From Penicillus capitatus (lineage: Eukaryota; Plantae; Chlorophyta), in the NCBI GenBank assembly GCA_965649825.1, contig OZ287696.1, forward strand, positions 911,101-975,100: a stretch of 64,000 nt of DNA, written 5' to 3'. Shown here in pieces: positions 4,670 through 56,275 of this stretch. Position 1 is the first letter of the stretch. Each line of letters opens with the position of its first letter. The notes beneath the pieces were generated by a model, which worked only from the letters and a program-made list of their open reading frames with translations, searched no databases and had not been told where the DNA came from. The translations under genes were made by a program, and so were the position numbers.

Positions 4670-5468
4670 CTATCTTCCTTTATTGCCATCAGACGGTGTG
4701 TTGTGAGACGGCGGCGGTGGCGGCTGATGCACTCCAGATGGTCCAGCACCGTTCGGCATGTTTCTTATGCAAGGATTCAGACGTGGCAGATCGTAATTCA
4801 GCAATGGCCTCTTTTGGCGACTCAATAGGGAGACGAATTGCGGCGCTTCGAGGCGTTTTCCTAAGACAGAGTTCATCTCGTGGCGGCTGCTGTCTGATGT
4901 GAGGGCAGTTGGCAATGGACGTCCCACCGCATTTCCATTGGCGCTCTCGTGGCCGCCACTGATGTCACGCACGGAATGTGTGACCAGTTTCTCGAAGCGA
5001 TAGTCTTCTTCAGGTCGTCTCTTTCTTCGACTGAGACTCTGCTCCAGCGATTCTAATCTGGATTGGATAGAATCCGCACGGCTGCGAAACTCTGCAGCAC
5101 TGGTGTCATATGCGGACGCCTGGTGTTTGCGTTTGGCTGATTCATTCCCCGTCGTCGAATTGGCGCCGAAGACTGAGTCAGCCACACAGCGGAGGTCGGA
5201 GTGAAGAATCTAGGCAGAGAAAACGAAAGTGTCAGTGTCGTTTCGCATCCAGAGGACCGTCGCTTCGTCCGACATGCAGACGGCTTACGTGAAAAGGACA
5301 TAAACGGTCGACAGCATCGTAAATATCTCGAAAAGGCGTTTCGAAATCCAAGTTGGCAAGAATTTGACAATCATGAGCCAAACAGTCGTCTCTTCGTACG
5401 GAACTTCGAGTTTTGGACGGAAAACGTAAAGAAGGCAACGTTTCACTTTGATGCGGGTGAGCAGCCAT
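4670..5468 (-). CDS. GLTSCR1/BICRA conserved-domain protein (non-canonical BAF/SWI-SNF subunit-like)
   Basis: LDFETPFRDIYDAVDRLCPFH|ILH matches the GLTSCR1 motif PDYxTPFxSxxDAxxRLLPYH; one intron joins ORFs 5232-5468 and 4670-5185, followed by a coiled-coil-like segment. Confidence 0.75.
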
Positions 5469-20214: not shown

Positions 20215-20516
20215 TCATAAACATTGCGATGCAGATTCTGAGACGTGTCGATGAATACTAATCTGCCCTTGTACAACAAATACGCACCACTTTTGAGAGG
20301 ATGATGAAATGGAAGCGATACCTCCTCGCACTGAACACGACTCATTTGCGTCATCAATTGAACGACGTTTGTCAGAGAATGGTTTCGAGAGTCTTCTGCC
20401 ACTGAGATCGATAGACGTAGAACATTCGGTGTTCCTTGTGGGGGGTCCAGAATCGGCCACGATTGAACAGCGTCGTTCAGAAAAGAGAGTGAGTGATCGT
20501 CTCCCGAAGGAATGGA
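20215..20516 (-). pseudogene. Decayed 3' fragment of the NIPA/ZC3HC1-like gene (intact copy at 30667-31854)
   Basis: ORF 20211-20552 SIPSGDDHSLSFLNDAVQSWPILDP matches SVPSTDDRSLSFLNDPVRSGPILNP; nucleotide match to 30520-30810 with frameshift. Confidence 0.85.
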
Positions 20517-20639
20517 AGTCGCCTTTCTATTCTTTCTGTCAAGACCATCCATACATCTTACCTACATAACCGAATTGTCTTTGTGAAGTGTCGAGATGTC
20601 CGACGATCAGTCTTGGTTAAAAACGAGGGTCATTGGGTG

Positions 20640-21910
20640 TTTGGGTTCAGAAAATGGATGGCTTTGAATCTTTGTATGACGATATCGATCGCGGACCGTT
20701 GGCCGTTCGACATTCAGCTTTAGGCAGCTTCGTGAGATCTGCGTCTATCGAACAACAGCTGCTTTCGAAAAGATCCACTGTCTGTCCGTCAATGTTGCCG
20801 ACCATCCCTTCGGCTAGCGTCTTGCCTAAGAAGACAGAGTGGTGATCTCCACATGACTCGGGTAGCGAGCAGTGGCGAACGAATGACACACAACGAGTGC
20901 CTCTCGTCGGCGGTGTAGTCACGGCCGGCAACACATGTCGATGCGTCAAAAAGAGCATAAGCCGGTTGGTTTCTCCGCAGACGGCCAAGTTCTCGTAGAA
21001 AGGCAGAGACTGCACAGAAAACCTTCGTCGCACACGACTACTTCTTGCGGGGCATCCTCACGATGGCTGTAGCTCCGAGTGTCGCAACGTCGACTGCGGA
21101 CGACAACAGACTCCATTCGGCCTCTTTCAGAATCACCACGCACATCCTTTCGATCGAAGAAAGACATCTGGCCGCTCTAGCTGCATGCAGCCTTTGCTTG
21201 ATCGCCATCGTTCGTGCCGTCTGGCATCCGGCTTATATTCGATATACTTCTCTTGTAGCATTACAGCGAGATCCGGATCTCCAAAGCACTGTTTCCCGAA
21301 CTCAGCCTCTTTCACTTACTGTTCTGGGTAAAAGCAAGTCACCGCCGGCTTCGCAGTCAGAAGAGTCTGCTCAGCCAGTGCAGACCGAGCGAATTTCATT
21401 GGCCGTCGCCAGCCTCAGCATCAAACACTCGACGCCGTGCGCGAACCGAACTAAAACCACGGGTCCACGGCCGTCTGGTTGTCGCAGATCAGCCGGCCGT
21501 TCGGTTCTGCCTTCCATGTCCGGAGGAGTTAGGTCAACCGACAACTCCAGAACCGATTCGCGTTACACCGTCGCAAGCGCTCTCGCGACGGCGTTCGCTG
21601 CAGAAACGTCCGAGACAGACGGCCGCCATCACGAAGAGTCCTTGCTGCTTCTTCGACAGAAAACCCCTGCATCTTCTCTCTGCTCAGGCGACGTCGAGCC
21701 GACTCGAGCGGTTCGCCGTTCGCAGATTCGCGCTGAAACGGTCGCGGAAACGCATGCGCGTTACATCTACTGTTACACCTAGAGGAGAACATCCGGACAT
21801 ACTGTAGACAATCTCACCTGTAAAAAACTCTGCACAGCTTACGAGAACGCTCTCCCGCTCGCATCTCGCGTCCCGACGACAGAATTCTGCGTTTCCGGCC
21901 CTTGGGCAGC
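20640..21910 (-). pseudogene. Possible decayed gene divergent from the Pro-rich gene (also at about 53630-54900)
   Basis: Minus-strand splice-like sites (TC|GTAAGC...CTAG, CA|GTAAGT) and protein-like stretches (EFGKQCFGDPDLAVMLQEKYIEYKPDARRHERW; SVQSLPFYENLAVCGETNRLMLFL) interrupted by stops; 1-bp indels between the copies; no family recognised. Confidence 0.3.
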
Positions 21911-22002
21911 CATCTCTTCGGCCGTCGGCGCATGCAGCCGCCGCCAAACGACCACAGTTAGCAGCCGCCAACCACATGCCGCGAACGACAACCGAGGCGG
22001 CC

Positions 22003-22008
22003 TATAAA
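22003..22008 (+). promoter_or_regulatory. TATA box of the Pro-rich cassette gene (copy 2 at 54995-55000)
   Basis: CCTATAAAGG about 100 nt upstream of ATG 22105, followed by a pyrimidine-rich leader. Confidence 0.5.
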
Positions 22009-22104
22009 GGTCCTGTCGAAGCGCCTTCCGCACTCGAGTTTCCGAGTTCTGTTTCTGCTTCCGGCGACCTTTGCTACTTTCTTCGACGACCGACTTCCAC
22101 GAAG

Positions 22105-23291
22105 ATGTCTGATACCAGAATGAACACCGAGGCCGATTACGGCTACCCAGACAAGCCGTAAGTCTTTTACCCACGCTTCGACGCGTCGCGCGCCTCAGAC
22201 CTCCTCGACTGCGGCGCTGGACGATCACCGTGCACATGGATGCGTCCAGCGCCACAATCCGAACGCATGCGGTCGCGTGCCTCCGAGAACGCGCAGCTGT
22301 CCTGTTCTTCGACAGGTCTCTAACCTGCGTCTGTGTTTAGGTTTTCGCAGGTCACGCTCCGGGAGGTCTTAAGCGACAGACCTCCCCGGGCGTTCGAGGG
22401 AATGGATGAGGCCGAGCGAAGGCAGTTGTATTGGGAATTAAAAGCCCAATCAACTGCCTTCAGGGGACAACAACTGCTCGAAGAGCAGGCCCCTCCTGTG
22501 CGGTTCGGTCCCAATAGGGACCAGACCGCACAGGCTCGGCCCGGACGGCGGGCGAGGGTCCTCTCTGCCGATGAGAGGAGAGCGCGGTTGGCCCAACAGG
22601 GCCAGCCTGCTGCTCCGCCGCCTCAGGCGCGCCCCGCATCGCCGCCTCCTGCAGCCTCCCAGCCACAGACATCATCGCCGCCGCCGCCGCCGCCAGCCGA
22701 GGCGTCACCAGCAGCCTCTCATCCGACAGCCCTGCCAGCGGCACCCCAGACGAGCGCGCCGCCGACCATGGAGTGGTCACCTGCGCAGCCAGCCACTCCT
22801 CATGTCCAACCTGCTGCGCCGCCTCCGGCATCATCACAGACGCCCAGTTCAGCCGCCATGGAGTGGTCCGCCTGTCCTTCCCCGCAGCCAACCCAGACGA
22901 TGTCCAATCCAACCACCCAGCCATTCAAGCCGCCGCTCTTCCCCCCTCGCCCGCAGGTGTTTTGCATACCTGCATCCCCTCCTCCTATCATCCCCTCACG
23001 TCTTTTTAAGTTTTCCTTCCCCTTTTTTCCCCCTCCCTTTCCTGCACGCACCTCCCAATACTCCCTACCTTCTCAACCTCCAATCCCCCCTCGTCCTTTC
23101 ATCCTTTCTGTCCGATATCCTGGCATCCCTCCCAGACCATACTTCTTATCTGGCGAGTGTGTGAGCTTGGGTCCTGCGATTCCTCAGCGCCTTTTCTTCC
23201 TATCAGGCGAATGTGTAAGTCACTTTTTTGTTTCCTTCTCTCTTTTGATGTGCTTTCTGTGTAGGTTTATGTTGAAGGTTGGTCTGCCTGA
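22105..23291 (+). CDS. Orphan Pro-rich protein, copy 1 (about 340-356 aa, 4 exons)
   Basis: Introns 22158-22198, 22316-22340 (or 22272-22350) and 23215-23264 give one frame ending ...FFLSGEC|VYVEGWSA*; synonymous-biased divergence from copy 2. Confidence 0.8.
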
Positions 23292-23740
23292 GGGCATCTT
23301 TCTCCACATTTTTGAACGCTGTTTTCTCTCTTTGCTGAAAAATTTTAAAAAAACAAAAAGATTCATGGGCTGTTTTCTTTTCTTCCTGTTTCTGCCAATC
23401 CACCTTCGCTTTGTTGTGGATGGCTGTGTTTGCTGTTTTTACGTGTTGGCTGTCAACAGCTCATCAGCTGTTTTGTACATGGAGCGTGTCGTTTCTTGAT
23501 CTGCTGTTTTGCTCGGCTGGAGGATGGAGACTGGGGTGTGCCACGTACTCTCTGTTTTTTACCTGGGATGGCTGCTAGCGTCGTTCTACTTGTCATTTTT
23601 GCTGATTTGGAGGCCGCCATGTCTATTTACCTGCTGTCTGGAGCTGCCACGTCCGATTTGGCGTTTTGATGCATAGAAACTGGAGTGTCCGACTCACTGT
23701 ATTGCTGCCTGGAGGATCCCATCTGCTGTCTTGCTGCTTG

Positions 23741-24010
23741 AAGCTGCCGTACCTCACCTGCTGCTGTGCTACTGGAGGCTGCCGTTTCTCACATGCCGCC
23801 TGACTGACCAGAGGCTGCCACACCTCACCTGCTGCTGTGCTACCAGAGGCTGCCATACCTCACCTGCTGCTGTGCTACTGGAGACTGCCGTTTCTCACAT
23901 GCCGCCTGACTGACTGGAGGCTGCCATACCTCACCTGCTGCTGTGCTACTGGAAGATGCTGTACCTCACCTGCTGCCTGACTGCCCGGAGGCTGCCTTGT
24001 CTTACCTGCT
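23741..24010 (+). repeat. Degenerate 35-36 bp minisatellite, about 8 units
   Basis: Unit like GCTGCCATACCTCACCTGCTGCTGTGCTACTGGAG. Confidence 0.85.
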
Positions 24011-24654
24011 TTCCGCTGCCCAAAAGATGCCATCTATTGATGTTCCCGTGCGGAGCTGCCGTGTCCGATCTGCTTATCTTACCGCCTGGAGACTGGAGTG
24101 TCCTAACATGCCGACTGCTCATCGAACGCTGCCGAGTCTCTCTACCCGATTCCTTGCCGACTGGAGGCTGCAGTTCTTTCTTTCTACCGTCTGCTGCCTG
24201 GAGACTTCCTGGTCTGTCTACCTGCTGCGTGGTGTGGATGGAGGCCGCAGTCGACCTCGTTCTACCTGCGACATCGCTGCCCAGAGGCCACAGTCGTTCT
24301 GCATGCAGTCTCGCTTCTTATGTGGGCCCAGTCGCCATACATGCCGCATTGCTTTAAAAGTCTGTGGTCGTTCTTACTGCTGCCGTACTGACAAGAAGAT
24401 GAGGAGTCTGTCTACCTGCCGCTTTACCATGGATGCAAGGCGACAGTCGCCTTCACTGTTGCCTTGGAGTCAGTGGATTCCGCAGTCACTCTACCTGCGA
24501 CCGCGATGCCCGGAGGCCACAGTCGTTCTGCATGCTGCCTTGATGTGAATGGAGGCCGCAGTCCTTCTACCCGCTGACCAGTTGCCCAGAGACCGTCGCC
24601 ACCCTACCTGTCGCCGTGCTGACTGTAAGATGTTGAGTCAGTCCACCTGCTGCC

Positions 24655-26382
24655 TTAACGATCATTGGAGGCGGCTCTCATCCTACCTGCTGCCTCCCTC
24701 GATGTGGATGCGAGGCGGCGGATGACTGCTGCTTCGACGAGAACTGGGGTCGCAGTTGACCTACCTGCCGCCTCAACGACAACTGGAGGCGGCAGGCGTT
24801 CTACTTGCTGCTCGCTGTGGATGCGAGGCGGCAGTCGACCTACCCTGCCTCCGCGAAGACAACTGGAGGCCGCAGTCGTCATACCTGCCGCAGAAGCCCT
24901 GCTTGCTGCCTCGCTGTGGATGCGAGGCAGCGGATGACTGCTGCCTCGACGAGAACTGGGGTCGCAGTTGACCTACCTGCCGCCTCAACGAGAACTGGAG
25001 GCGGCAGGCGTTCTACTTGCTGCCTCGCTGTGGATGCGAGGCAGCGGATGACTGCTGCCTCGACGAGAACTGGGGTCGCAGTTGACCTACCTGCCGCCTC
25101 AACGAGAACTGGAGGCGGCAGGCGTTCTACTTGCTGCCTCGCTGTGGATGCGAGGCGGCAGTCGACCTACCCTGCCTCCGCGAAGACAACTGGAGGCCGC
25201 AGTCGTCATACCTGCCGCAGAAGCCCTGCTTGCTGCCTCGCTGTGGATGCGAGGCAGCGGATGACTGCTGCCTCGACGAGAACTGGGGTCGCAGTTGACC
25301 TACCTGCCGCCTCAACGAGAACTGGAGGCGGCAGGCGTTCTACTTGCTGCCTCGCTGTGGATGCGAGGCAGCGGATGACTGCTGCCTCGACGAGAACTGG
25401 GGTCGCATTTGACCTACCTGCCGCCTCAACGAGAACTGGAGGCGGCAGGCGTTCTACTTGCTGCCTCGCTGTGGATGCGAGGCAGCGGATGACTGCTGCC
25501 TCGACGAGAACTGGGGTCGCAGTTGACCTACCTGCCGCCTCAACGAGAACTGGAGGCGGCAGGCGTTCTACTTGCTGCCTCGCTGTGGATGCGAGGCAGC
25601 GGATGACTGCTGCCTCGACGAGAACTGGGGTCGCAGTTGACCTACCTGCCGCCTCAACGAGAACTGGAGGCGGCAGGCGTTCTACTTGCTGCCTCGCTGT
25701 GGATGCGAGGCAGCGGATGACTGCTGCCTCGACGAGAACTGGGGTCGCATTTGACCTACCTGCCGCCTCAACGAGAACTGGAGGCGGCAGGCGTTCTACT
25801 TGCTGCCTCGCTGTGGATGCGAGGCAGCGGATGACTGCTGCCTCGACGAGAACTGGGGTCGCAGTTGACCTACCTGCCGCCTCAACGAGAACTGGAGGCG
25901 GCAGGCGTTCTACTTGCTGCCTCGCTGTGGATGCGAGGCGGCAGTCGACCTACCCTGCCTCCGCGAAGACAACTGGAGGCCGCAGTCGTCATACCTGCCG
26001 CAGAAGCCCTGCTTGCTGCCTCGCTGTGGATGCGAGGCGGCGGATGACTGCTGCCTCGACGAGAACTGGGGTCGCAGTTGACCTACCTGCCGCCTCAACG
26101 AGAACTGGAGGCGGCAGGCGTTCTACTTGCTGCCTCGCTGTGGATGCGAGGCGGCAGTCGACCTACCCTGCCTCCGCGAAGACAACTGGAGGCCGCAGGC
26201 TCCCTACTTGCCGCAGTCGTTGTACCTGCAGCCTCGCTGTGGATGCGAGGCGGCAGTCGACCTACCCTGCCTCCGCGAAGACAACTGGATGCGGCTGTCG
26301 CACTACCTGCGACCTCGATGCCCGGATGCCGCAGTCCACCTACCTGTTGCCTTGCCGAGTTGTGAGGCGGCTATCGCCGACC
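24655..26382 (+). repeat. Tandem stem-loop array, copy 1 (114-bp and 99-bp higher-order units built from 35-40 bp hairpin modules)
   Basis: About ten 114-bp units and 4-5 99-bp units; stems CTGCCGCCTC/GAGGCGGCAG and GCTGCCTCGC/GCGAGGCAGC. Confidence 0.95.
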
Positions 26383-26619
26383 GTAAGTCCTTCTTTCGCA
26401 AGCAGACGGTCTCTCACTCTTTAATTGCATACAGACTTTGTGGCGTAGTGGGCATCTGTTCTTCCCTGCATCACAACTCAAAACTTTTCACCTGTCGGCA
26501 CACTATTTGAAAGAGTGACATTTTACAAGCTTCTTTGATATATACCGTTGTAACGCTTTCAACAGTACAACACACTTGTCTAACACTATTTCCTACTGAA
26601 CCACACTTTTAAAAAGGAG

Positions 26620-27880
26620 TGACATTTACAAGAATTGTCTAAGCAGTCGATTCCTGTTTTCGTTACATAGCGTGTTATATGATTCGACGACAGAACGCCA
26701 AGTCATCAACTCCTCCCTGACTGTTGTCGAGGCTATCGCAAGACGCCCTTCGTCGTTAACTCGTCGCCGTCTGCATGGCCAAGTCGTCTGAAATCCACAG
26801 ATCTCTTCGGTGCACTCGCCTCCGCCGACAGATAGAATGGACGCCGACTCCGACAAGGCGCCGTCGACTAAGGTGCCTAAATTCATCAAGCACGGCGCGG
26901 CGTACGACCGTGGATAACTGCTCAGTTCTTCGTATATCGAACAGTTGCCTATTGGCACTGCTAACGCCACAATGCCGTGCTTCTCTTCGAAAGGCTTGCA
27001 CTCAAGCGTCGGGTGTTCAAGTAGTGCACGAGATGTCGGAAGCGTGGCGGCGGATGAGAATAGACTTATGGCGGTTGTGTCAACGAAGTGTCGACGGGAG
27101 AGTGGAAAACGAGAACCCTGTCGATGTGCCGGACACTTGAGCAGTTAGCTTGCCCTTTCAGCTTGCAAGTCGATTCGCAACGCCGCAGACCATGTGTCGT
27201 TTGGTACTGGCTACGGCACGCCCCCCCCCCCCCGAGGCAAAATAAAAAGTCGCTGCTTGTCATCGACGGCAGATGACCGCCTCGAGGACATGTGCGGGAG
27301 ACGAACGATCCTCTCTTCGAACTTTCTACATAATGCGTCGCCTAAAACTCGGCGTTGACTCTTCCCGCCGTTCGAGGAGTGCACGCATCAGAATCCGTGC
27401 CGCTTTTCAGGGTAAAGAAGCGCGTGCATACATTGGCATCACGTACGCGCCGTTTTCGTTCTATCGCCTTGGTAACTTTGCAGTTCAAGCAAAGAGAAAC
27501 AGACGAGGAACATGGAAGACCCCGACGGAAGACGAACAAATGTAAGAACAATGCGAACTCTAAAGTGGCCGTAGTCGCAGAGGCGGTCGAGAGCAATGCC
27601 TCCAGGAATGCTTGCTTGTTTGATAGCTTAGATGACGTGAACTCGCTGCTGTTGTGCCATTCGATGCATCGATCCGCTTTTTTACTGCTCGCACTTTAGG
27701 CGTATCTCTTCGATCTAGATGAACTGCCTCGCGACGACCCGCGTTACTCATGTTCGACGGACCCCTCTAACGAGTCCTGCACAATTGATCGCCATTCAGC
27801 CGTTCTAACAACGATATCGAGGTCGACGCCTCTCTGCGTCTCGTTTGTTAGATTTCGGTAGATCGTCAGAATGACATTTG
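26620..27880 (-). pseudogene. Diverged shared segment, possibly a decayed minus-strand gene (partner about 60245-61510)
   Basis: Alignable peptides LSTVVRRAVLDEFRH versus CPSTVLRQDVLAEFRN; minus-strand TGTAA at its 3' end in both copies; frames broken in both. Confidence 0.3.
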
Positions 27881-27892
27881 CACTCGCGTTAA

Positions 27893-29067
27893 ATGGAGAC
27901 GCCTGTCCGTACGCCAATGTCGCCGCCATGGGAAGAAGATCTCGACAGAGAGCGCGTCTACAAAGCGACTTCTGCTCTTTGTCAGCACGTCCAAGAACAG
28001 AAAGAAAAATCACAAAACATCCTTGAAGACGATGCAGAGTGGATCTTCCTCGTAATCCTGAAAATATCACCTCTCGGGCTGAATGTGTCTGTATCAGTTT
28101 GTGCGCTATAAGTCGATTCCGGCCATCTTCCGAAAGTTCCCCGTTCAACTGTACTCTCCTCGAACTGCCACTAGAATGACATCTTATCTTCTACTTGTTC
28201 CTCAGGAAACTGTTCAAGTCCTTCTGGAATACGGAGGATTTTCGAATCTGCCTTATTATGCACGACAAGAATGCAGGTGCGTTTAACGCAGATGAATGCA
28301 ATAGTAAAGACGGTGGATAAAAGGAAGGAGAGTCAAGACGGCACGCGAACTCCTCATACCAGATCGTGTGACAGAAGTGCTGAGCGTTCAGGACATCCGA
28401 AGGCAATACGGCGATGACTCCTCGAAGAGAGAGCTGTGCAAATCGTATGATCTGTTTCTGCTGGAGAGATCTATACGAGATATCTCTAACGAGCTCCTCG
28501 GTGCCAATCTCCTGGCAGATCGACGTTCGCTGACGAAACGCTGCAGGTGGTCGTTTCGTGGAGATGAAGAAGGTTCCCGTGCTCGTTCATCTGACCCGTC
28601 ACCCCGAAGTGTGGATCAAATCGATCGAAGCCGAGAAAAGCAGGACACAGATGTTCTGTCACGTGCATCAGGAGAGGAGCATCAGGTACCTCTGCCCCCG
28701 TGATCATCTTTATGACGCGTTATAGTTTGACAGGGTTGGCAGGAGTTCGTTCACCGCGGAAGAGCTGACAGAGAATATATTCTCCGTCGTGCAGCAGATC
28801 GTTGAGCATCCGGAATTGGAGAACTGGCAGGACATCATGCAGCTTTACGTCTGTACAGGCAGAAGCGTCCGTTTGCCTGTCTATCAAACATTTCCCGATC
28901 CGCCGCAGATCGAAGAGGGGAAAGAGGAGGACAGATCGTCGCGATGGGGAAGAAAACGACACGCAAAGAGCCGACGATCACATCAGCTGACGAATCGTCT
29001 GATGGGAGCATTCGCAGCAACATATCCGCCTGAACCTTTGCCTGTCTCAAAGAACCCTGACAGCTAG
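27893..29067 (+). CDS. RSL1D1: Ribosomal L1 domain-containing protein (RSL1D1/Cic1/Utp30-like)
   Basis: RERVYKATSALCQH...EWIFL, KRELCKSYDLFLLERSI, QIVEH..LENWQDIMQLYVCTGRSVRLPVYQ; TGTAA at 29093. Confidence 0.8.
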
Positions 29068-29512
29068 CTTAGATGCTGATTGAGTGCGTTTGTGTAACTC
29101 CAGTAGTCGTATTGGAGAGAGCTCTAGATTCATGATCGACTCCTCGCTGAACTCGAGAACGCGATATGAAGACTTCCAAGAATCGCTGCACAAGAGGTTG
29201 CCAGTTTCGACTCCGAAAGCAGAGGTCAATGAGGAAGACCCTCGGCATCAGCAATTTCATGACTTCATTATTGACTGCACTAGATCCGTGTCGACAAACC
29301 ACGTTGCCTCTCGTTTGCTTATCCCCCGAGCACACTTCGGAGACAGTCAGAACATTCACTTGAAACGTCTGAACTGGTGACGACTCTTTGGCGGCGTCGA
29401 AGGATGCACGGACACTCTTGCCTCACGCCTGACAACTTCGACGAGAGTATTCATCTTGTGACACGTGTCATTAAACGAAGGCAGTGTTTATTCGGTGTCC
29501 AAGTGTCAAAGG

Positions 29513-29872
29513 ATGTATGACTTTTGTTTTACGTATCCCTATGCGGTGCTTCTGGCGCTGGGAGGATTAATTGGCTACGCGACCAAAGGCAGCACCGGCT
29601 CACTCGGAGGCGGTGTCGGCTCAGGCGTCGTACTTTATCTCCTCGCGCATATCAGTCTGCGCTACTACCATGCCGGGAAGCTGTGGAAGACCGGAACATT
29701 CCTTTCCCTGGTGGTCTCGGTTGCGCTGACCGTGGTCATGGCTTTGCGCTACCAGGAAAGCGGGAAGCTGTTTCCTGCTGGGGTGTTCACAGTTCTCTGT
29801 GGATCGATGTCGCTGTTCTATGTCTGGTCCCTTTTCCTGGGACCTCAGCCAAAGAAGAAGACGAATAAATAG
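29513..29872 (+). CDS. TMEM14/FAX (fatty acid export 5/6-like) small membrane protein
   Basis: MYDFCFTYPYAVLLALGGLIGYATKGSTGSLGGGVGSG...RYQESGKLFPAGV; TGTAA at 29909. Confidence 0.9.
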   Translation: MYDFCFTYPYAVLLALGGLIGYATKGSTGSLGGGVGSGVVLYLLAHISLRYYHAGKLWKTGTFLSLVVSVALTVVMALRYQESGKLFPAGVFTVLCGSMSLFYVWSLFLGPQPKKKTNK

Positions 29873-40133: not shown

Positions 40134-43100
40134 TCAGTACCATGGATGCCACGTTGGATCCATGGTGCATAAATTCTCTGGATCTGTTGCTTTGCGAATG
40201 AGTTCTTCGACGCCTCTGTTAATGGCCCCGCGCGGCGCTCCCTCTTCCATGTAGTTCTTCGGGACATCTGGACAGATCTCTTTGACGTTCTGCATCGCCC
40301 CGGCGACATTCTTTTCGACAAGTGGCTGTAGCTGAGACATACTCGATGTGTACTGGCTTCTGGATTCTCTCCTGGAGGCCCATGCCAATAGCTCGTCTCT
40401 GAAGAAGAGACTCAGACACGAGGCGAGATTCGAATGGCGCTGCGTCAGTGCCATAGCCGCCGACACCATCGACGTCGTAAAAACGCCCTCGACACCGAAT
40501 GGACTGAAAAATGTCGCCAGGTTTCGTGTCAAGCGAAAAGGAACGGCCTCTTCGTTCTGGTGCACATATCCCTGGGCATTGACCAAGGGACAGAAATCCA
40601 CTTGCAGTACTTTGCCAGAAGAACGGGAGAACAGGATCTTTCCTGGCACCCGGCCGCCAATCGACAGCATCACAGACATCAGAGACGACAGCGCCATCTG
40701 TGCACAGAACTGCTTACGGAAGACCCAGAGATGATTCGAAGACGGCAAGATTCTGTACATATAAAGCGAAAAAATATTCTCGGCTATCTTTTCATCGGGC
40801 CCCTCGGTGATCTCTTTGAACGCTTGGAGGGCGAGTTCAGCTGGATCATCGTTTCTGTTGTAAATTTTTCCTTTGAAAAGCAGCACAGGATAGTCGGGTT
40901 CCTTGCCAAGAGACTGACAGTTGACTTCCAGCGCCTCCAAGTAAGTGGTAAAACAGGGATCCTCTTCGACGAGACGGACTTTGTTCCAGACAGGAACGAT
41001 GACAGGTGCAAAGAAGCTCAGAAATCTGCTGCGGCATTGATGGTGCTTATTCAGGAGACGGTTCAGTAGACACATCAACTGCAGCATACGTTCCTCTGAG
41101 GATGCCGGTTGGCCAGAGGTATGTCCGTTCTGCAGGATGAAGTGCGTCTTGCGTCCTTCCGAATCGTAGAAGGCGATTCTGCGAAATGCTGTCCCCTGTC
41201 GACGAATCGTCCGAATCTCTGAGCTGATCTTCTCCAGATAGACTGGAACATCGGCAATGGTATCTGGCGACTTGGTATACTGACAGGGCATCTCGATGCC
41301 GTGCAAATTGAGCTCCTGCAGTGCAGGGCTCTCTCTGTGCAGCTGCAGAACGGTCGGCATCTGTTCGTCCAGATACTGGCTCAGCATATTGCGCCATTTC
41401 TTCAATCGCTGTGTCAGTTCTCCCAGCGTTTTTGGAAAGCCGTCTGCCATGGGACTGAGATGATGAACGAACGCCTCCTTTAGATCTTTATGCACGGCAG
41501 TGCTGGCACGGGTGTCTGGGAAACAGGCACGGCATACGCCATCGATCTCGCGAATGAGATTACTCGGAACCTCCATCGTCTGCGGCCCCGGTACTTTGCA
41601 GCAACGCGCCAACAACACATGAACGACCGCCATCAATCGCTCCTCGGGTTTTGCCATAAAATTGCTGGCAATTTCGCGGAGCATAATCTCGAGTGTGTTG
41701 GACAAGGGACCCAGCTGGTGCTTGAGTCTGTCCATCCATTCCTTCACGTGTTCAAAGTTCTGACGGATGGTCGAGCGGGCGCCCAGTAGAGCTGCATCCT
41801 CTCGGCCAGTACCCGAAGAACTGCCTGCTTGTGGATTGCCTGCCTGCGTCATGTCGGATGGAGTGGCAGAACTGGTTGCCACATCTGTCCGCTTGATTTT
41901 CTCCAAAGCCACATTGGCCGCTTCTCTCATGTTCAACATGTGCACTCTCAGAAAATAGTAGAGCGCTTGGGGATGTGTCTGGATGATTCTGGGAAGAATG
42001 CCTTTCAGAGATTCGCCTTCTGGACGATGCAGCACTGAGAGAATCTGCGGAATGTAGAAGAGCCAGTAGGCAGATGGAATGACCTCGGCACCACTCAACG
42101 TCTCTCTAAAGACTTTATCCACCGTTCCTGTTAAGCCACCGATCACTCAGGCACGCAGACACAAAGAGAACGGACCTGTCTTGTCAAAGGACAGCAGATG
42201 AAGGCATCTAGGAATCATGGCACGGGCGGCAGATGATGGTAACTGCATCGCCTGGAAATAACAGCCAACGGCATATTCCAGCTGAACAGAGGCATTGGGG
42301 TCTTGCTTCTTCTTCTCATACATTTCATCACAGAAGGCTCCCCAACTGAGCCACGCCTCAGGGAACTGATGATTGAGGGTGATGGACGTGCTGAAGGATT
42401 GATTGGCCATCTCTGGATCGCCCAATGCTCTGTAGTACTCTCCCTGCAGTCGGAAGATCTGAGCCTGGAGTCCTTGATAGGGAAAGTAGTCCAGATTGGT
42501 CGAGCAAAGCATCGTCAGTCCCGTGAGTTTTTGGTCGTCCATCAGTAGATAGGCTTTGGACTGCTCCACGATCTTGAGAAAAGCTTCTTGCACGTCCATG
42601 TAGCTATCGCTGTACATGTTGTTCTCGATATCGATGCAGACGTCTAAGGCTCCGTGCTTTCGGGCGACATTTGCTAGTCGATTGATGCTCGATGCCTTGT
42701 CCTTGATGCACAGGTGATGGAGCGAAGGCGAATTGGGCTCGGATCCACCGCTGATCGAATTGGCAATGCTGCTGTATATGATGTGACGCCAGATGAAGAC
42801 ATCTGACCACACAGAAAGCGGCTCCCAGACATTAGGACTACGGAGACGCCACGTTTCCAGAATCTCCTTCATGAAACCCGACTGCTCATAACGACCGCCT
42901 CTCGGCCCGAGCTCCATGAGTGCCCTAAAAACCAAAGGCCTCAGTAGAGAGCATCTCAGAGATGTCCACCCACTTGGCGCTCTCGCACACCTCCACGACC
43001 TGTTGAAATCTCTGCAGCAGATGCACTTGTCCAAGAACGCCGATCTCTGGCAGTTGCCACCATCGTTGGAGGCACTGGTCGATGGCCTGGCTGATGTGTG

Positions 43101-46100
43101 TGTTGCAGAGATTGGCGTTGTTATCCTGAAAGGCACTGTAGATCATGAGCATCGAGTATTGGAGCTTGTCTGGAAACTGCTCCTTTGCTCCCTGGAGGAG
43201 TTGTCTGAGTTCGCTCCAATCAGGATCGGGTAATCTCCACGAGGCATCCGCCAACAAGGCAACGCTTCTCGAAGCTTCTGCCCAACTGTGCAGCTCATCC
43301 CATTGATTCAGCTCCTTGGCACATCGGCACCATTCCTCAGACCAGAGCATGACTTCCCGCGAGACGCCTTCGGATCTTCCTTCTGTGGAGTGCACGGCTG
43401 CCTCGCCAAAGACGTGCAGTGCCTCTTCCCAGTATCCATACTGCATCAGATTGATACCGTCATGCGTGTAGCCGCCAAGAAACCGTTTCTTCCACAAACC
43501 AAACATCATGTCCGTCTCCGAAAGCAGACTGTACAGTTCGACCAAGGTATCGAAGCATCGCGATTCTTCGGGAAAGATAACGACGTGCGATTCCAGCAGA
43601 GGAATGGCAATGTGCCAGGCATTGTACGTCTTGCCCAAGTACTTGATGAGCTCGGGCGGAATCTTGGGCTGTGGATAGCATAGAGAGGTCGCTTCCATCA
43701 GTCCCTGAATGACATTCGGTCGATGCGATGCTTGGACAGCGTGATAGCGCTTCGTCAGGATAGAGATGATGGGCTTCGCCAGCGAGACTTTACTGTTCTT
43801 GTCCAGTGTCGCCCAGACGATGGGAAAGATCAGGACCCATAGATGATAGGCCAGGTAAGAATGCACATGTGCAAACTCTTTGAGTGGTCCCATCAGATCA
43901 TCAGCCAAGAATGAACCTATGTGACACACAGCTGCTTGGCAGAGAGGAAGGCAGGGGGACAATGGCAGACTTCTTTCTCGAATGAACTGCATGTGGTCAG
44001 AGAGAAGTCGATCCAGAGGACTCATGGGCTCGTTTTCCATTTCCGTATCATCAGAGCCCATAGGCGGACCATGATGCATGACATCAGCCGTGCATGTCGG
44101 GAAGGGAGCCAGCTGCGCTGAGTTGGGAAAGAAGGTCACGGGTTCTCTTCCCCTTAGAGAGGCCAGGAGATAATCCAGCGCTTGTTTCAGCCAGAAACGG
44201 CTGGAGACATGTTCCCAGTCCTGTGTCTGCAGGATGAATTTCAGGCGTTCGAACAGAGAGCTTCCAAACGATCCTTGGTACAAGGTGAAGAACTGTTTGC
44301 GCAATTCTGGCGTCGTGGTGCGGATGCCGCAGAGGAACGTCTGCTCGACATGTGCAAAGACATCTCTCCTGAAATCCTATGCGTGCACGTACACACCCTC
44401 AGCCACCAATCATCAAAGCCATACCACGTACTGCATTCAGTCCAGGGGACGCGCACACGTCGTAGATGGTACTGAGAAAGAGGGAATCGAAATGCTTCTT
44501 CATACATGGCTCCACCAATCCATTGGCATCCAATCTGCAAATCTGCTGCATGGACCAGAGGAGATGTCGTCGCGTGATGGCACGCGATTCTCCGTTTTGG
44601 ATCCACTCCTTCAGCCAATTGGACACGATGACCAAGACATGATAGAAGACAGATCTGTCAGGAACGCGACCGCCTTTCCATGTGAGAAACTGAATCATGG
44701 AAACGACAAAGCATTCGCGTTCGCTGCTGCCAATCTCGTGCAGACGCCCACCACAGAGATGCAGAATCTTGCAGACGTTGTGCATCTGTGTTCCAAAGCT
44801 GGGCAAAGGAATCGTATCTGTGTCACCAGACAACGGAGGCGGTGCCGAATGGGTTGGCGTAGAAACAGGGTTTTGCAGAATGATGACGTACTCTCGAGAG
44901 TATCTCTCCAAGAGACGCACCAACGAAGAGAGAAAGCGCCCGACCATGCCAATCCTGTTGTTCTTGTCTGCCTCCAGGATTCTGAGACATGCCGAGATTT
45001 CGTGTTCGACCTGTCCCTGCTGGATGACGTGACTGTTGACGTCCAGATACTTCACGAGCAATTGCGTATCGAGGGTCTCTCTCAGGAGGGGGTTCACATC
45101 TTCGATCGCAAAGACCTTCTTGAGCGCTGAGCAAAGTCTGTCCAGGAGATCTTCGTCGTGCATGATGATGATCTTCTGTGACAGCACAATGAAATAATGC
45201 CAGCCATGTTCCAGGAAGACAATGGGCTGGTATTGCAGGGCGAGGGAGACCAAATCCAGTCCTGCTGTCAGGATCAACGCCGGCGATTGGTGCTGCATCT
45301 GACTGCCTTCGATCAGTCGCTCCACGAAATCCAATCGGAATTCGACATCTGGCCATACGTCTAGTGCCTGGCTCAAGATGCGCATGATGTCGCCGTACGA
45401 GTATTTCACGGTGTTGTCTTTGGAGTGGTCTGACGGCACCGCAAACGCTGTCTTGGCCAAGAACGCAACCACCATTTTCTTCATATTTGTGAACGTCTCT
45501 CCTGCCAACGGAGGTGGAGAGACGGATCCCATCATAGCATCGTCGCCGCATCCCTTGATTCTTTGGACCTCCCAGTCAACAATCACTCTTTCCATGTCAA
45601 TGGCCATCTGTCGATTCTCTGAATTGGCATTGATCGGAGGGCGGCGCAGACGGCTGAGTGTATTGACCATCTGGCCTAGAAAATGCGAACGGTAGGCGTA
45701 GAAGAGATCTGGATGTCCGATGATCATTTGCCAGAGATTCATCAGCAGATTGAGCTTGTGTCCTTCGGCCTGCATGTGCTTGATGGCATACTCCATCCAA
45801 ATAGGAATGCTCCCTGGCTCCGTCTGTCCAACGAATCGCTCTGCCAGTGCAGGAACCATCACATCGAGTGTTTCCTGCACGAGCTCCCTCTTCGTCTCGG
45901 CAAAATCCGATTTCAGAAGATTCACAAAGACTTGCAGGACGGTCTTGTTGCTGAGCTGAAGTGTTCTCAGGATGTGGGCGACCAAGAGAAATGCATGGCT
46001 CTTGCATTCGACGTTCTCAGCTTTGAGGAATGACCACGCATACTTAAGGACCCCTTTGCCAAATCCATCCGCGCAGATACCGGGTGCCCCCACCGTGAGC

Positions 46101-49100
46101 AGTCGCCCAACATCCAGCAATTCCACTTCCAGACAGACATCTCTCTGCACGTCCGTGTTCTTGGCCAGATTGACAAACGCCTGAATGAGATGCATAGAGA
46201 TGACGCAACGCATTTCGTCTTTCTGAATCAGCGATTGGAGAATGGGAATCACCAGGAATCTCAGCACAAAGATCGACTGCTCCTGAGACATGTGCGCATT
46301 CAGATGTGTGAGGACAAAAAGCAAAACAGAATAGAGTTCTTGATGGCTGTAGTGCTTTGGCACATAGTCCATGCAATACTCCTTAATAAAGGTGAAGTCC
46401 ACTTTGGAGCTGCTCTCAAAAGCCGTCAGCAAAGCCACAAGGGGCTCCACTTCGTGATGATGCACCGAGATGTAGTTCAGCAGACACTTGGCGATAGCTT
46501 TGCTCTCAAAGAGCTCTCCGTGTGTCATGGTCTCCTCTCTTGTTGCCCTCTCTTTCATGTCAAGACCTTTCCAGAGGGAGAAGAGGTACTGAAAGAGCTG
46601 ATGTTGATTCGGCAGCCACTCCGGTTGCAGTTTGACGATGGTCTTGATCAACTGCAGTGCATGATACATGGCCATCGATGGGATATCCATCGCAGACGAT
46701 GGTCCTTCCGATCCACAGGGATTCGACTGCAGGAGAGACACAAGGTGCCGAGTGGACTTCATCACTTCATGCAGCAGAGGCTCTCCAATCTCTGACTTGA
46801 TGATATCGATAAAACGTGTGACATAACTGGCGTTCTGCATGCGTGTGGGTGCCAGGAAGTAGTTGATGGCGTCATCCCGGTATCGGATGAGAAACTTGGT
46901 CAGTGGGGATCGGTAAGGCGACCAGAGAATGTGAGGCACAGGTCCAACAGGTGAGGCATGACCCAGTCTCTCCTCGAGTTCGATGGTCAAAACGACAAGG
47001 CCGATGCGGTCCGTTCCTGATTTTTGTGTTTCCAAAAAAGAGCTGGCAGAGTCTGGGAGCAGATGGAAGAGCTCCAGAATGGCGGCTGCGATTTTGGAAT
47101 CGTCGGCTGGTGACCACGATTTCTGGAAACCCATGCCGCCATCCGATTCAATCCACCTTTTCAGATGTTCCAACAACTTTTCCCCCAGCGTCAGATTAAA
47201 CCACTGCGAGAGCATTCGCAAGGCCTCGGCACCTCCTTGCAGAACATTGAGATCCAGTGAGCTGTATTTGTTGATCCTGGAGAGTATAGGTGTGAGAAGA
47301 GACTGGATGTCGTACTGTGGGATTCTCTGTCCCTGAATCAGCCGTGTCAGTCCTGTCTTGCAGATCTCCCTCAGCTTCTCTTCTGGCGAGATCAGCATCT
47401 TAAAAAAGACGCGCACCATGGATTCCAGCTTCTCTTTGGCTCCAGGAATATCCATGCTGTTGAGAAATGGATCCCAGCCAGACAGCGTCGCCAGCATCTG
47501 CAATGCCGATTCCTTCATTCTCGCCAAGACGCTCATCCGTTCAGGCCGCGCTCCATTGCCGCTTCGCATCATGGCTGCCGCATCGTCAGGGGCTTCGCAC
47601 AGGAGGACCACGGCAAAGTCCGCACAGAGAAGGATCTGTTCCAGCAGATGAGGGACGGAAGGAAGGCTTTGATTGATGCAGTAGACAAGCAGACGTGACA
47701 GTCCCTCCATGTGCGATGCAAATGCCGTGATCACTTGATGCGCCTTGTACTTTTTGGCGGCCGAAGCGCACTCCTCCAGGGATCTTTTGAGACTCTTCGA
47801 CTGAAGGGTCACGAATGGATCCAACACATCCACGATAGATTTTCTGAAGCTTTGACAGAGATAGACGAGACAGTCGTGGCAGTCTTCTCGGACTCTTTCT
47901 GGGACGTTCAGCAGAAAGACCGTCAAACAGAGTTTGCCAATCGCCTGTGTCATTTCCTGAGATTCTTGCATTCCTAAGGAATCTGTCATGGAGCCGTGTC
48001 CTTCGACTGCCTTGTGCATCAATTTCATCAGCTGTTCTCTCAGTAAGGTGCGAAGAGACAGTCCATGATTCGGCAGCGACTGCATCAGGTGCAGTGCACT
48101 TCTCATGAGCTGCTGCAGCGCTTTGGCCAGAAACACAGGCGGAAGCTCTGCAATGAGCACTTCTATGCCATAGATGCCTCCCGTCTTGACTGCCCAGTTG
48201 TCACCAAAACAGCAATTCACGATACGATGCAGCACGCTGTTGACCACATCTGGCAGACCACATTCCCGGGCGAGGTTGCGTTGCCTATGGTGATCTGACA
48301 CGCCACAGGGGGCATACATCTCTGAAGTGTCCATCATATCGATTTCGGGAATGCTCTTCTCGTCGTTAATCTGGAGCAGCATTTGAAGAAACCATGAGAG
48401 CGCTCGAGCACCACATTTGGTAACGGATGTCTCTTCGTTTGACATGACCTGCACAACAGATAGACATCCCACTGTCGTTTGGCCTTGGGCCGCGTACTTC
48501 GATCAAGGCATCGATGAAGAGTTCAGGTTCGAGGTGTTTGACGGTGGAGCTGGGTCGAGCATCGCCGGCGGCTGCCTGCAAGAACGATCTGGATTCTCCG
48601 GCGGCGCATCCAGATGGAGTGAAGTGAAAGAGCAGAGCAAAATGACGACAGATGCCTTTTGCAAAGACAATGGCTTCTTCTTTCAGCTCAGGATCCATAC
48701 AGAGCATGAGTGCCGTGGATATGAGGGATGTCATCGTTCTCTTCTCCGCAAGATATTGTGATTTGACTTGCATGTGTTGCTCTGGACGTCCACCGCAATG
48801 TGGGCCGTGTGGCAGGGGTGCCGCTTCCAGAATGGCGTTCTTTAGCCTCGACAGACTTGAGAAGCAACCTCGAATCTGCGGCAGGTTCATCATGGCAATT
48901 AGACAGACATGCAGAAACTGCATTCCTTGCTGGCGATAGTAAAGGACGTTTTCTGGATCGGGAGCACTTGACGAGGGAGATCTGTTGAGGAGTTTCTGGC
49001 TTGTCAGAGAAATGCATTTGTCGAGAGGGACTAAAAATTTGGTGTCCGGTGCAAAGACCAGAATGAGTCTCAGTCCGTGCTCCGGGTTGTCTTTCCATTC

Positions 49101-51663: not shown

Positions 51664-51730
51664 GAATGTGGAACGAAACAGAGCGACGAGGATATGTACG
51701 ACACTTCGATCGCGACGACATTGAACAGCG

Positions 51731-55096: not shown

Positions 55097-56275
55097 ATGT
55101 CTGATACCAGAATGAACACCGAGGCCGATTACGGCTACCCAGACAAGCCGTAAGTCTTTTACCCACGCTTCGACGCGTCGCGCGCCTCAGACCTCCTCGA
55201 CTGCGGCGCTGGACGATCACCGTGCACATGGATGCGTCCAGCGCCACAATCCGAACGCATGCGGTCGCGTGCCTCCGAGAACGCGCAGCTGTCCTGTTCT
55301 TCGACAGGTCTCTAACCTGCGTCTGTGTTTAGGTTTTCGCAGGTCACGCTCCGGGAGGTCTTAAGCGACAGACCTCCCCGGGCGTTCGAGGGAATGGATG
55401 AGGCCGAGCGAAGGCAGTTGTATTGGGAATTAAAAGCCCAATCAACTGCCTTCAGGGGACAACAACTGCTCGAAGAGCAGGCCCCTCCTGTGCGGTTCGG
55501 TCCCAATAGGGACCAGACCGCACAGGCTCGGCCCGGACGGCGGGCGAGGGTCCTCTCTGCCGATGAGAGGAGAGCGCGGTTGGCCCAACAGGGCCAGCCT
55601 GCTGCTCCGCCGCCTCAGGCGCGCCCCGCATCGCCGCCTCCTGCAGCCTCCCAGCCACAGACATCATCGCCGCCGCCGCCGCCGCCAGCCGAGGCGTCAC
55701 CAGCAGCCTCTCATCCGACAGCCCTGCCAGCGGCACCCCAGACGAGCGCGCCGCCGACCATGGAGTGGTCACCTGCGCAGCCAGCCACTCCTCATGTCCA
55801 ACCTGCTGCGCCGCCTCCGGCATCATCACAGACGCCCAGTTCAGCCGCCATGGAGTGGTCCGCCTGTCCTTCCCCGCAGCCAACCCAGACGATGTCCAAT
55901 CCAACCACCCAGCCATTCAAGCCGCCGCTCTTCCCCCCTCGCCCGCAGGTCTTCTGCATACCAGCATCACCGCCTCCTTTAATCCCCTCCCGTTTGTTTA
56001 AGTTTTCCTTCCCTTTTTGCCCTCCTCCCTTCCCTCTACGCACTTCTGTGTTTTCCTTTCCCTCTCCACCTCCAATTCCCCCGCGCCCTTTCATCTTGTC
56101 AGTAGGCCCCCTTGGTATCCCTCCCCGACCGTTTTTCCTATCCGGCAATTGTGTGCCCATCGGCCCCGCTATCCCTGAGCGACTTTTCTTCCTTTCGGGA
56201 GAATGTGTAAGTCACTCTTTGCTTTTTCTCTCTGTTAGCCTGTTTTCTGTGTAGGTTTATCTCAAGGATTGGTGA
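55097..56275 (+). CDS. Orphan Pro-rich protein, copy 2
   Basis: Same exon structure as copy 1; last intron 56207-56254; ends ...FFLSGEC|VYLKDW*. Confidence 0.8.

Follow-up and report, generated by a model that had tools for sequence, protein, structure and literature searches.

A lineage-restricted green-algal gene family encoding a predicted disordered protein with six PxΦPxR repeats, and a conserved set of RNA hairpins inside one of its coding exons

The 64,000-nucleotide stretch of Penicillus capitatus DNA analysed here, referred to below as the window, carries a gene at positions 22105-23291 of the + strand. A comparison of 11 related gene copies places this gene in a family with three exons, two introns and, in the present copy, a product of 317 amino acids. 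On sequence grounds the gene is protein-coding, and it belongs to a nuclear, lineage-restricted multigene family in a green alga. The elements of the gene and of its flanks are as follows.

21305-22054, + strand: conserved upstream block (promoter/regulatory), about 700-750 nt, with its end about 45 nt beyond the TATA box; two copies of GCGTTACAC and GCATGC motifs are present
22003-22008, + strand: TATA box (TATAAA), within the block AACCGAGGCGGCCTATAAAGGTCC
22105-22157, + strand: coding part of exon 1, 53 nt from the ATG at 22105; encodes MSDTRMNTEADYGYPDK plus 2 nt of a split Pro codon, boundary CC/GTAAGT (22157/22158)
22158-22340, + strand: intron 1, 183 nt, with GTAAGT donor, CTAAC at 22320-22324 and TAG acceptor
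22341-23214, + strand: exon 2, 874 nt, encoding the N-domain, a Pro/Ala/Ser/Gln linker and a six-repeat C-terminal region
22768-22779 and 22858-22869, + strand: two MEWS motifs in the linker, within exon 2
22933-23214, + strand: six degenerate repeats of about 16 amino acids, each made up of a Px[F/I]PxR core and then xxΦΦ; repeats 5 and 6 terminate in SGECV
23215-23264, + strand: intron 2, 50 nt
23265-23291, + strand: exon 3, a micro-exon encoding VYVEGWSA and the stop codon TGA (23289-23291)
23318-23510, + strand: 3' region with five GCTGTTTT motifs and the conserved block CTGCCA[AT]TCCACCTTCGCTTTGTTGTGGATGGCT

The TATA box, the ATG at 22105, the open reading frame, the proline motifs and the FLSGECV duplication (at 23143 and 23197) described in an earlier note on this DNA are all present, and the peptides quoted there are borne by the long exon starting at 22341. 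The block containing the TATA box is near-invariant in 11/11 copies, and no ATG occurs in the stretch from about 22035 to 22105. Exon 1 follows the consensus M[AST]DxxMxxE[DAE]DYGYP[GD][KR]P, with changes sitting at third codon positions. The donor and acceptor of intron 1 are kept in all 11 copies and its length is 164-185 nt in the seven copies modelled, with an insertion of about 55 nt lengthening it in loci L002, L006, L007 and L009. A candidate acceptor for this intron at GCGTCCAG was rejected, as it is missing (CCGG) in L004a, L004b and L009. The exon 2 reading frame is open in all family copies examined.

The last intron and the micro-exon proposed earlier are borne out by the comparison, the boundaries TG[TC]/GTAAG ... 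YAG/[GA]TT being kept in 8/8 loci. Intron 2 is 48-53 nt long in seven modelled copies and fits the size of the introns of the neighbouring Tra1 gene (46-50 nt), by which the closest named relative is judged to be Ostreobium. The micro-exon homologues code for 5-8 amino acids in seven of the eight loci (VYLKDW*, VSVQF*, VSIEN*, VRVEDWSA* and VPIRD*); the ending VYLKDW*, which had been assigned to the present gene, belongs instead to the micro-exon of a paralogue at 56255. The first copy of the donor, GAGTGT/GTGAGC at about 23155, was considered as an alternative splice site and set aside, its GT context not being kept in paralogues. The predicted protein includes the stretches DYGYPDKPFSQVTL and GECVYVEGWSA. 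A non-standard genetic code was judged unlikely because the Tra1 reading frames reach 1357 codons without TAA or TAG.

Both flanks of the gene contain conserved non-coding sequence. In the upstream block the majority-base fraction is 0.74-0.88 per 50-nt segment over 10 loci, and identity to distant copies is about 71-74%, against a difference of 50-85% (saturated) at synonymous sites of the coding sequence; conservation tapers gradually at its edges. Reading this block as protein-coding on either strand fails, as the long open reading frames of some loci shift frame between loci and are interrupted by indels of 1-2 nt. GCATGC occurs 24 times over the window against 27.7 expected, so that there is no overall enrichment and the motif is conserved and clustered locally only. 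On the 3' side, 10 of the 15 matches to GCTGTTTT in the window lie directly 3' of two gene copies, all on the + strand, where 2.2 would be expected by chance.

The second of these gene copies belongs to a duplicated segment. Neither the duplication, nor the multigene family, nor the RNA structure described below had been mentioned in the earlier note.

55097-56275, + strand: paralogue (copy b), 315 amino acids; exons 55097-55149, 55333-56206 and 56255-56275

A segmental duplication of about 8 kb (20511-28549 versus 53503-62072) holds one gene copy in each arm; identity between the copies is 100% over 21494-22950 and drops to about 70-80% thereafter. Mosaic gene conversion between family copies was also observed. 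A further gene was looked for where the two arms have diverged (26.6-28.5 kb and 60.2-62.1 kb) and was rejected, since both strands and several frames score alike. In addition to at least one paralogue in the window, several copies lie on other contigs of the same sample. The family is narrow: searches of 1.84 billion representatives gave 17, then 26 matches, all unnamed, and these homologues are read-through ORF calls on genomic DNA from metagenome-type assemblies. A scan of the JGI metagenomes and IMG/VR with an N-domain profile returned no relatives. In Pfam, the only match at E<=10 to the ORF, N-domain, C-terminal region or spliced protein was a chance one to PAT1 (E=0.95), and a PDB profile search gave 0 matches at E<=10. 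The description of the gene as a spliced orphan of no recognisable family therefore stands.

Where it could be computed, dN/dS for exon 1 is 0.08-0.17, compared with 0.18-0.53 for the N-domain, 0.24-0.42 for the linker and 0.10-0.15 for the repeats, and it is because of this last value that the repeat tail is taken to be coding sequence. The N-domain shows less synonymous divergence (dS) than the remaining coding sequence.

The protein begins with a short acidic N-terminus (DYGYP), followed by a basic helical N-domain with an invariant RRARVLS, a Pro/Ala/Ser/Gln spacer and the repeats. The linker is poorly conserved and has one SPPPPPP run and several irregular SPPP-type runs. An AlphaFold2 model built on a 17-sequence family alignment has a mean pLDDT of 56 and a pTM of 0.21; it is confident only for about the first 45 residues of exon 2, which are helical, while the block-mean pLDDT of the repeat region is 37-61 and the C-terminal 100 amino acids are predicted to have no secondary structure. 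The N-terminal segment, earlier called globular-looking, is modelled as a short helix and one long helix. Short N-terminal helices aside, the prediction is thus of disorder along nearly the whole protein, and the model would place the motifs in an accessible, disordered segment.

PxxPxR is the class II SH3-ligand consensus. The PxxPxR motifs pointed out earlier are real and non-random, but number six rather than five: they lie at amino acids 216, 233, 249, 264, 278 and 296, with a spacing of 14-18 amino acids, and all fit Px[F/I]PxR. A count of six was reached in 0/20,000 composition-preserving shuffles of the C-terminal 104 amino acids (shuffle mean 0.44). The motif array is retained in distant members despite their differing linkers; one distant subfamily has five 17-amino-acid PP.IPPR.. 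repeats with a hydrophobic x[LV]F/ΦIPAx segment after each, and P0037 has four PSPPIPPRxxxFxCPAR units. All six motifs of the present gene match the class II form xPxΦPx[R/K], in each case with Arg at the last position and F or I at Φ. Class II SH3 ligands, such as those of Sos bound by Grb2/Drk, sit in disordered regions, as the present repeats are predicted to do. However, the gene has no homology to Sos or any adaptor and its host is a green alga, and the class II consensus lacks the hydrophobic pair that follows each core here as a conserved R-x-x-Φ-F. This pair is conserved as strongly as the PxxP core, and the true recognition unit may therefore differ from PxxP. Repeat 4 shares its core, PPIPPR, with Drosophila Sos-S2 (SPPPIPPRL), a peptide that is bound by the N-terminal SH3 domain of Drk with a Kd of 41 uM (PMC10532153).

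The coding sequence of the N-domain, together with intron 1, also contains a set of predicted RNA helices.

22355-22607, + strand: structured coding region with 8 helices: five local stem-loops (H1-H5), one local hairpin between H2 and H3, and two long-range helices
22363-22394, 22419-22460, 22496-22533, 22561-22582 and 22586-22607, + strand: stem-loops H1, H2, H3, H4 and H5, respectively, from RNAalifold
22207-22259, + strand: intron 1 hairpin, a 17-nt inverted repeat, 88% complementary; apex CAUGCACAUGCAUG in most relatives and GUGCACAUGGAUG in this copy

RNAalifold applied to the N-domain coding region gave 75 pairs and a consensus energy of -105.9 kcal/mol. Pairing is kept in 93.9% of alignment cells against 33-50% in slid controls, and double changes are seen at 16 pairs (37 cells), a level reached by 0/500 shuffles and compared with 2-5 pairs in slid controls, although the structure was derived from the same alignment. 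At alignment columns 169/180, for example, the pair is AU in four loci, UA in three and CG in three, and is never broken. In 10/10 loci H3 folds with a minimum free energy between -27 and -34 kcal/mol and a z-score between -7.1 and -9.3. For the whole region the z-score is -10.1 in the window copy, -6.9 in L012, -5.4 in L010 and -1.6 in L011, the most divergent locus examined, which retains part of the structure only. L012 and L010 stood outside the derivation of the structure; both keep H2 and L012 also keeps H3. The sense strand is favoured because G·U cells (53) outnumber A·C cells (12), but among variable pairs the excess is no more than 23 to 12.

Paired columns are 2-3 times less variable than unpaired ones at every codon position, and several amino-acid changes (D/G/V, A/S/E/P and Q/R) are compensating partners of synonymous changes on the opposite arm. 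In the unpaired columns of the N-domain, variation is 0.50 at codon position 3 compared with 0.31 and 0.22 at positions 1 and 2. The window contains 12 short-range inverted repeats, eight of them within the two gene copies. The hairpin of intron 1 forms the same long fold in 9/10 loci, with differing outer-stem sequences and z-scores of -2.5 to -7.9. The whole window had no Rfam match at gathering thresholds and the interval 20500-24000 had none at E<=1; no tRNAs were found.

Judged by these comparisons, the first 255 nt or so of exon 2, which code for the N-domain, also fold as a conserved sense-strand multi-hairpin, with constraints at the level of codons and of pairing both visible, and the strong conservation of the N-domain is partly owed to RNA base-pairing. 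Quasi-palindromes can also acquire compensatory changes through template switching at the DNA level or through gene conversion, with no selection acting on the RNA. It is unusual for a protein-coding exon to contain conserved hairpins of this kind. The stem-loops that localise yeast ASH1 mRNA and the HIV-1 RRE are cis-acting structured RNAs inside coding regions, and the element described here would resemble them as a multi-stem-loop structure of a few hundred nucleotides within a translated reading frame, conserved by covariation; it has no sequence or Rfam relationship to either, however, and is common to a whole paralogous family.

We propose, with a probability of about one half, that the locus encodes a disordered, lineage-specific protein that presents several ligand motifs and is translated from an mRNA with a structured cis-element. 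The gene is driven by the conserved TATA promoter, after some 700 nt of conserved non-coding sequence. The protein may be a scaffold or ligand that works multivalently through linear motifs, with several copies of an SH3- or WW-like proline-recognition module recruited by its six class-II-type polyproline cores. It is only the resemblance of the motifs that suggests SH3 or WW partners; for a disordered protein with six PxΦPxR cores a multivalent adaptor would nevertheless be the most economical reading. The N-terminal helix or an RxRxxS site could give docking or regulation, and the exon hairpins, the intron 1 hairpin and the 3' GCUGUUUU cluster may together form a post-transcriptional control element affecting the translation rate, stability, processing or localisation of the mRNA.

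A more specific form of this proposal is offered tentatively, as something we consider possible rather than probable. Here the exon would be of dual use, the same 255 nt or so encoding the N-domain and a selected five-hairpin RNA element which, with the intronic hairpin and the 3' cluster, would control where or when the mRNA of a multivalent disordered scaffold is used, so that peptide conservation would be partly dictated by pairing. The mRNA might, for example, be localised within the large coenocytic cell of a green alga, or be subject to autoregulatory cleavage. To our knowledge, few cis-elements for post-transcriptional control have been described in green algae, and, should the RNA structure prove functional, this family would serve as a clean natural system in which to study both such control and overlapping protein and RNA constraints. 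An orphan proline-rich family alone would be of modest interest; the combination of selection on the protein, RNA pairing, an intron hairpin, a constrained promoter and gene conversion is more unusual. The case also carries a warning that peptide conservation alone may be mistaken for evidence of a globular domain.

It is unlikely, in our estimate, that RNA is the main or a co-equal product, with the hairpins processed (by a Dicer-like enzyme or RNase III, for instance, into small RNAs) or acting as a bifunctional structured RNA, and with peptide conservation largely a by-product. The reduced variability of paired columns at every codon position, the amino-acid changes that compensate for synonymous changes across the stems, the low dS of the N-domain, the concentration of inverted repeats in the two gene copies and the whole-region z-score of this copy would all be in keeping with such a product. 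Against it, codon periodicity is clear in the unpaired columns, and strong purifying selection acts at the protein level on exon 1 and on the C-terminal repeats, which are in one continuous frame with the N-domain; moreover, the stems are 11-18 bp, below typical Dicer substrates, and have no Rfam match.

The proline content raises the question of a secreted or cell-wall hydroxyproline-rich glycoprotein, or of the repeat-peptide precursor suggested earlier, with the repeats serving as structural modules or excised peptides. Like extensins, PRPs and pherophorins, the protein has a very high Pro content, short SPPP and SPPPPPP runs and tandem short repeats, and belongs to a multigene family; the five closely similar 17-amino-acid units of the distant subfamily and the conserved Cys in CIPAS and SGxCV fit the same idea. 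We nonetheless regard this reading as very unlikely. The conserved N-terminus, MSDTRMNTEADYGYPDKP (M[AS]DxxMxxEDDYGYPGKPF across copies), is acidic and hydrophilic and by inspection contains no signal-peptide-like stretch, the units, which are degenerate in the window's own subfamily, are not bordered by dibasic or other regular processing sites, and there are no regular Ser-Pro(3-5) glycomodules, no regular Ser-Hyp4/Tyr cross-link array and no match to the Pfam extensin, pherophorin or BURP profiles. The repeat core, furthermore, has an invariant Arg and bulky hydrophobic residues, which sets it apart from those wall proteins.

About equally poor are the prospects of a mobile or virus-derived reading frame of gag or ORF1 type, in which the folded RNA of the 5' coding region would serve as a signal for packaging or dimerisation and the conserved flanks would be the ends of an element. 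Retroelement leaders typically have structured RNA overlapping the 5' reading frame, which the present arrangement resembles, and the unit is multi-copy and flanked on either side by conserved non-coding sequence; an A-rich tract follows the stop codon, and every copy has satellite arrays next to it. Yet a reverse transcriptase, integrase or transposase reading frame is found in 0/12 loci, and the called neighbours with Pfam matches are ordinary cellular genes (among them COG4, HSP70, TMEM14, aspartate kinase/homoserine dehydrogenase and a protein kinase). The two conserved spliceosomal introns, the age of the copies (saturated dS) with dN/dS of 0.10-0.53, which is purifying selection rather than neutral decay, and the lack of discrete shared termini, of IMG/VR relatives and of matches to Pfam transposable-element or viral profiles argue against it as well.

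The three-intron model of about 350 amino acids given in the earlier note, with introns at 22158-22198 (41 nt) and 22316-22340 (25 nt) around a 117-nt exon and a 39-amino-acid segment ending in AVLFFDR, is scarcely tenable: the 117-nt segment has a length divisible by three, keeps an open frame in this copy and has GT/AG dinucleotides at the proposed sites, but its two splice sites (acceptor at 22198, donor at 22316) are missing even in the closest relative (L005, 75% identical), the segment shows indels that are not multiples of three and the 55-nt insertion of four loci, it overlaps the conserved intron 1 hairpin, and an intron of 25 nt would be half of the host's usual 46-50 nt. The single intron of 183 nt is equally in frame, and conserved, and gives the product of 317 amino acids; the supposed exon and the peptide LFFDR of the claimed N-terminal segment are intron sequence.

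The span 22105-23291 on the forward strand runs exactly from start codon to stop codon, and the peptides quoted in an earlier note, which had described the gene from its sequence, all lie inside the long open reading frame (ORF) 22333-23499. That note's observation was largely right, but its gene model was partly wrong, as its extra exon (22199-22315) fails in relatives: the AG and GT sites are missing there, some indels have lengths that three does not divide, and a 55-nt insertion stands at this point in four loci. The error arose because 117, the length of this exon, is divisible by three, which leaves both models in frame in this copy (copy a; its paralogue, copy b, lies at 55097-56275). 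Aligning the 5' region of 11 copies from nine loci, we find a nearly invariant TATA block (AACCGAGGCGGCCTATAAAGGTCC), a poorly conserved leader of roughly 70 nt, and a first coding exon of 53 nt (M[AS]DxxMxxEDDYGYPGKP) that ends at CC/GTRAGT and differs among copies mainly at third codon positions. A single intron follows in the 5' part, ending in YAG just ahead of [GAT]TT-[TG]C-CAR-GT (FSQV/FAQV):

22158-22340, + strand: intron 1, 183 nt, with CTAAC 16 nt ahead of the acceptor

Towards the 3' end, eight of eight loci keep the donor TG[TC]/GTAAG and the acceptor YAG/[GA]TT of a last intron of about 50 nt, which a micro-exon of 5-8 codons follows in seven of them. The corrected products have 317 aa (copy a) and 315 aa (copy b).

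The gene is protein-coding, and selection on its parts was estimated by the Nei-Gojobori method.

dN/dS by part of the gene
Exon 1: 0.08-0.17
N-domain (encoded by the start of exon 2): 0.18-0.53
Linker: 0.24-0.42
Pro-rich repeat region: 0.10-0.15, synonymous sites saturated

By these values, constraint on the protein sequence is strongest in the pyrimidine-rich C-terminal part, which is therefore not a non-coding tract. A chance ORF, also considered as an explanation of the gene, was judged unlikely.

The most interesting result, which goes beyond the earlier note's view, is that the coding sequence of the N-domain doubles as a conserved RNA structure of putative role. A scan of the 64-kb window for inverted repeats gave 12 short-range ones with a length of 16 nt or more, and eight of these fall within the two gene copies. 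PPVRFGPNRxQTxQ is encoded by H3 (22496-22533), the strongest of the stem-loops; it folds in each of the 10 loci tested, with energies between -27 and -34 kcal/mol and z-scores between -7.1 and -9.3. One H3 pair stays intact in every locus, four loci having AU there, three UA and another three CG; it joins the third base of a Gly codon, a synonymous site, to the middle base of a D/G/V codon. Across the N-domain coding region (22355-22607), RNAalifold gives 75 pairs in eight helices, with 93.9% of cells paired and double changes at 16 pairs (37 cells), so many being reached in none of 500 shuffles, and pairing falls to 33-50% once the 3' partners are shifted by 1-3 columns. Both a codon constraint and a pairing constraint are visible here, the mean pairwise difference at codon positions 1, 2 and 3 being 0.31, 0.22 and 0.50 in unpaired columns and 0.10, 0.10 and 0.25 in paired ones. 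The sense transcript is favoured as the folding strand because G·U cells exceed A·C cells (53 vs 12 overall; 23 vs 12 among variable pairs). Two loci on other contigs were left out when the structure was derived: L012 keeps both H2 (22419-22460) and H3 with altered sequence, its residues being changed at and around the H3 loop, and the distant L010 keeps H2, again with altered sequence. A further locus, L011, keeps the structure in part only. Compensatory changes in quasi-palindromes can also stem from templated mutation at the DNA level or from gene conversion.

Searching with the protein encoded by the long exon gave 17 matches, all to unnamed proteins; every one looked up is a read-through ORF, called in prokaryote style on a long contig from one of two ENA assemblies. 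The exon 1-exon 2 junction is in none of the family proteins inspected, so none of these is transcript-derived, and the splicing model is a prediction from sequence. The window itself is eukaryotic:

40134-51892, - strand: Tra1/TRRAP gene with very long exons (ORFs up to 1357 codons)

The four introns read in it are 46-50 nt long (GT...AG). Ostreobium quekettii supplies its best named relative (44% identity), with Botryococcus and Lupinus next, which makes the host a green alga lacking any close annotated relative. The description of the protein as an orphan holds: an exhaustive search with an N-domain profile gave just 26 proteins among 1.84 billion representatives, none of them named, searches of Pfam and PDB gave no match, and JGI metagenomes and IMG/VR held no relatives. 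A transposable element or gag-like ORF is unlikely, as there is no reverse transcriptase or transposase in any of the 12 loci, the introns are conserved and the gene is under purifying selection.

Distant members are built in the same way, with cleaner repeats: five PP.IPPR.. units of 17 aa each in one subfamily, and four PSPPIPPRxxxFxCPAR units in the distant protein P0037. MEWS motifs are missing in some distant members (L011 has MDWES), and L002, L006, L007, L009, L010, L011 and L012 have an extra intron (donor around ...GGGEV/) directly behind the N-domain; what the family keeps invariant is therefore the N-domain together with the ΦPxR repeats. In copy a, a palindrome, GGAGTGG...CTGCGCAG...CCACTCC (22770-22799), overlaps the first MEWS motif.

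AlphaFold2 with the family alignment gave a mean pLDDT of 56. Confidence is confined to roughly 45 residues at the start of exon 2, which form a short helix and a single long one (DEAERRQLYWELKAQ...), and disorder is predicted for the remainder of the protein. Residues that hardly vary are grouped in PPRAF, LYWxLKAQxTA, PPVRFGPNR and RRARVLSxExRRxRL. RRARVLS matches the basophilic-kinase consensus RxRxxS and is a candidate site. The PxxPxR-like motifs reported earlier are present, although they number six Px[F/I]PxR cores and not five; they lie in the C-terminal 104 aa, spaced 14-18 residues, each followed by xxΦΦ, and six such cores occurred in none of 20,000 shuffles. Our best hypothesis is an orphan multivalent PxxPxR protein, and our best functional guess a multivalent proline-motif ligand, preferred because PPIPPR, found among the algal repeats, is also the core of the Drosophila Sos-S2 peptide SPPPIPPRL, for which binding to the N-terminal SH3 domain of Drk has been measured (PMC10532153), although this is a resemblance. 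A wall glycoprotein or a peptide precursor, the latter among the earlier suggestions as a repeat-peptide precursor, is unlikely, the N-terminus not being signal-peptide-like.

The gene is carried by a segmental duplication:

20511-28549 and 53503-62072: units of about 8 kb, the second with copy b inside it

From about 20600 the copies share 96-100% identity, and over 21494-22950 they do not differ at all; identity then falls abruptly to 70-80% inside the repeat-coding region, from roughly 22970 on, and this diverged part has pS 0.51 and dN/dS 0.14. Such mosaic identity suggests a recent gene-conversion tract, ending inside the repeat-coding region, over an old duplication. A TMEM14-like ORF (29465-29872) adjoins copy a and has a 78%-identical paralogue at L009 (913-1233), about 3 kb upstream of a family member; duplications therefore took neighbouring genes along.

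At 183 nt, intron 1 is roughly four times as long as the introns read in Tra1 of the host. Non-coding conservation is found within it and upstream of the gene:

22207-22259: conserved intron 1 hairpin, with apex CAUGCACAUGCAUG in most relatives
21305-22054 (copy b, 54297-55046): conserved non-coding block (about 750 nt) that takes in the TATA box and the sequence upstream of it

The outer stems of the hairpin differ in sequence yet pair in nine of 10 loci, and its apex resembles the plant RY/Sph element CATGCATG. The upstream block is 74-88% conserved over all loci, including copies of a different sample, with indels of 1-2 nt and no reading frame common to the loci. Between the same copies 50-85% of synonymous sites differ, so the block is under constraint. 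It holds GCGTTACAC twice and a palindrome, GGCGCATGCAGCGCC.

Five GCTGTTTT motifs lie on the + strand within about 200 nt 3' of each stop codon, followed by minisatellites:

23318-23510 (copy a) and 56303-56488 (copy b), + strand: GCTGTTTT clusters
23723-26400 and 56500-60100: minisatellite arrays, periods 35 to 342 nt

The two clusters hold 10 of the 15 GCTGTTTT matches in the window (2.2 expected), and may be sites for RNA-binding proteins or a polyadenylation-related element. The window's minisatellites have a common core, CTGGAGGC, with 35 of its 39 window matches in the arrays, all on the + strand. Arrays lie 3' of every copy in the window's subfamily; L003, L004 and L008 have arrays with related TGGAGGC-type cores 3' of the gene, and L005 also has downstream arrays. 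Copies a and b lack a perfect hairpin, GTCACACTCTGAAGTGTGAC, that lies in an A-rich 3' tract in L003 (~5250-5330), L008, L006 (6287-6463) and L007 (6261-6445), and of which L004b and L009 carry the variant CTCACAC...GTGTGAG.
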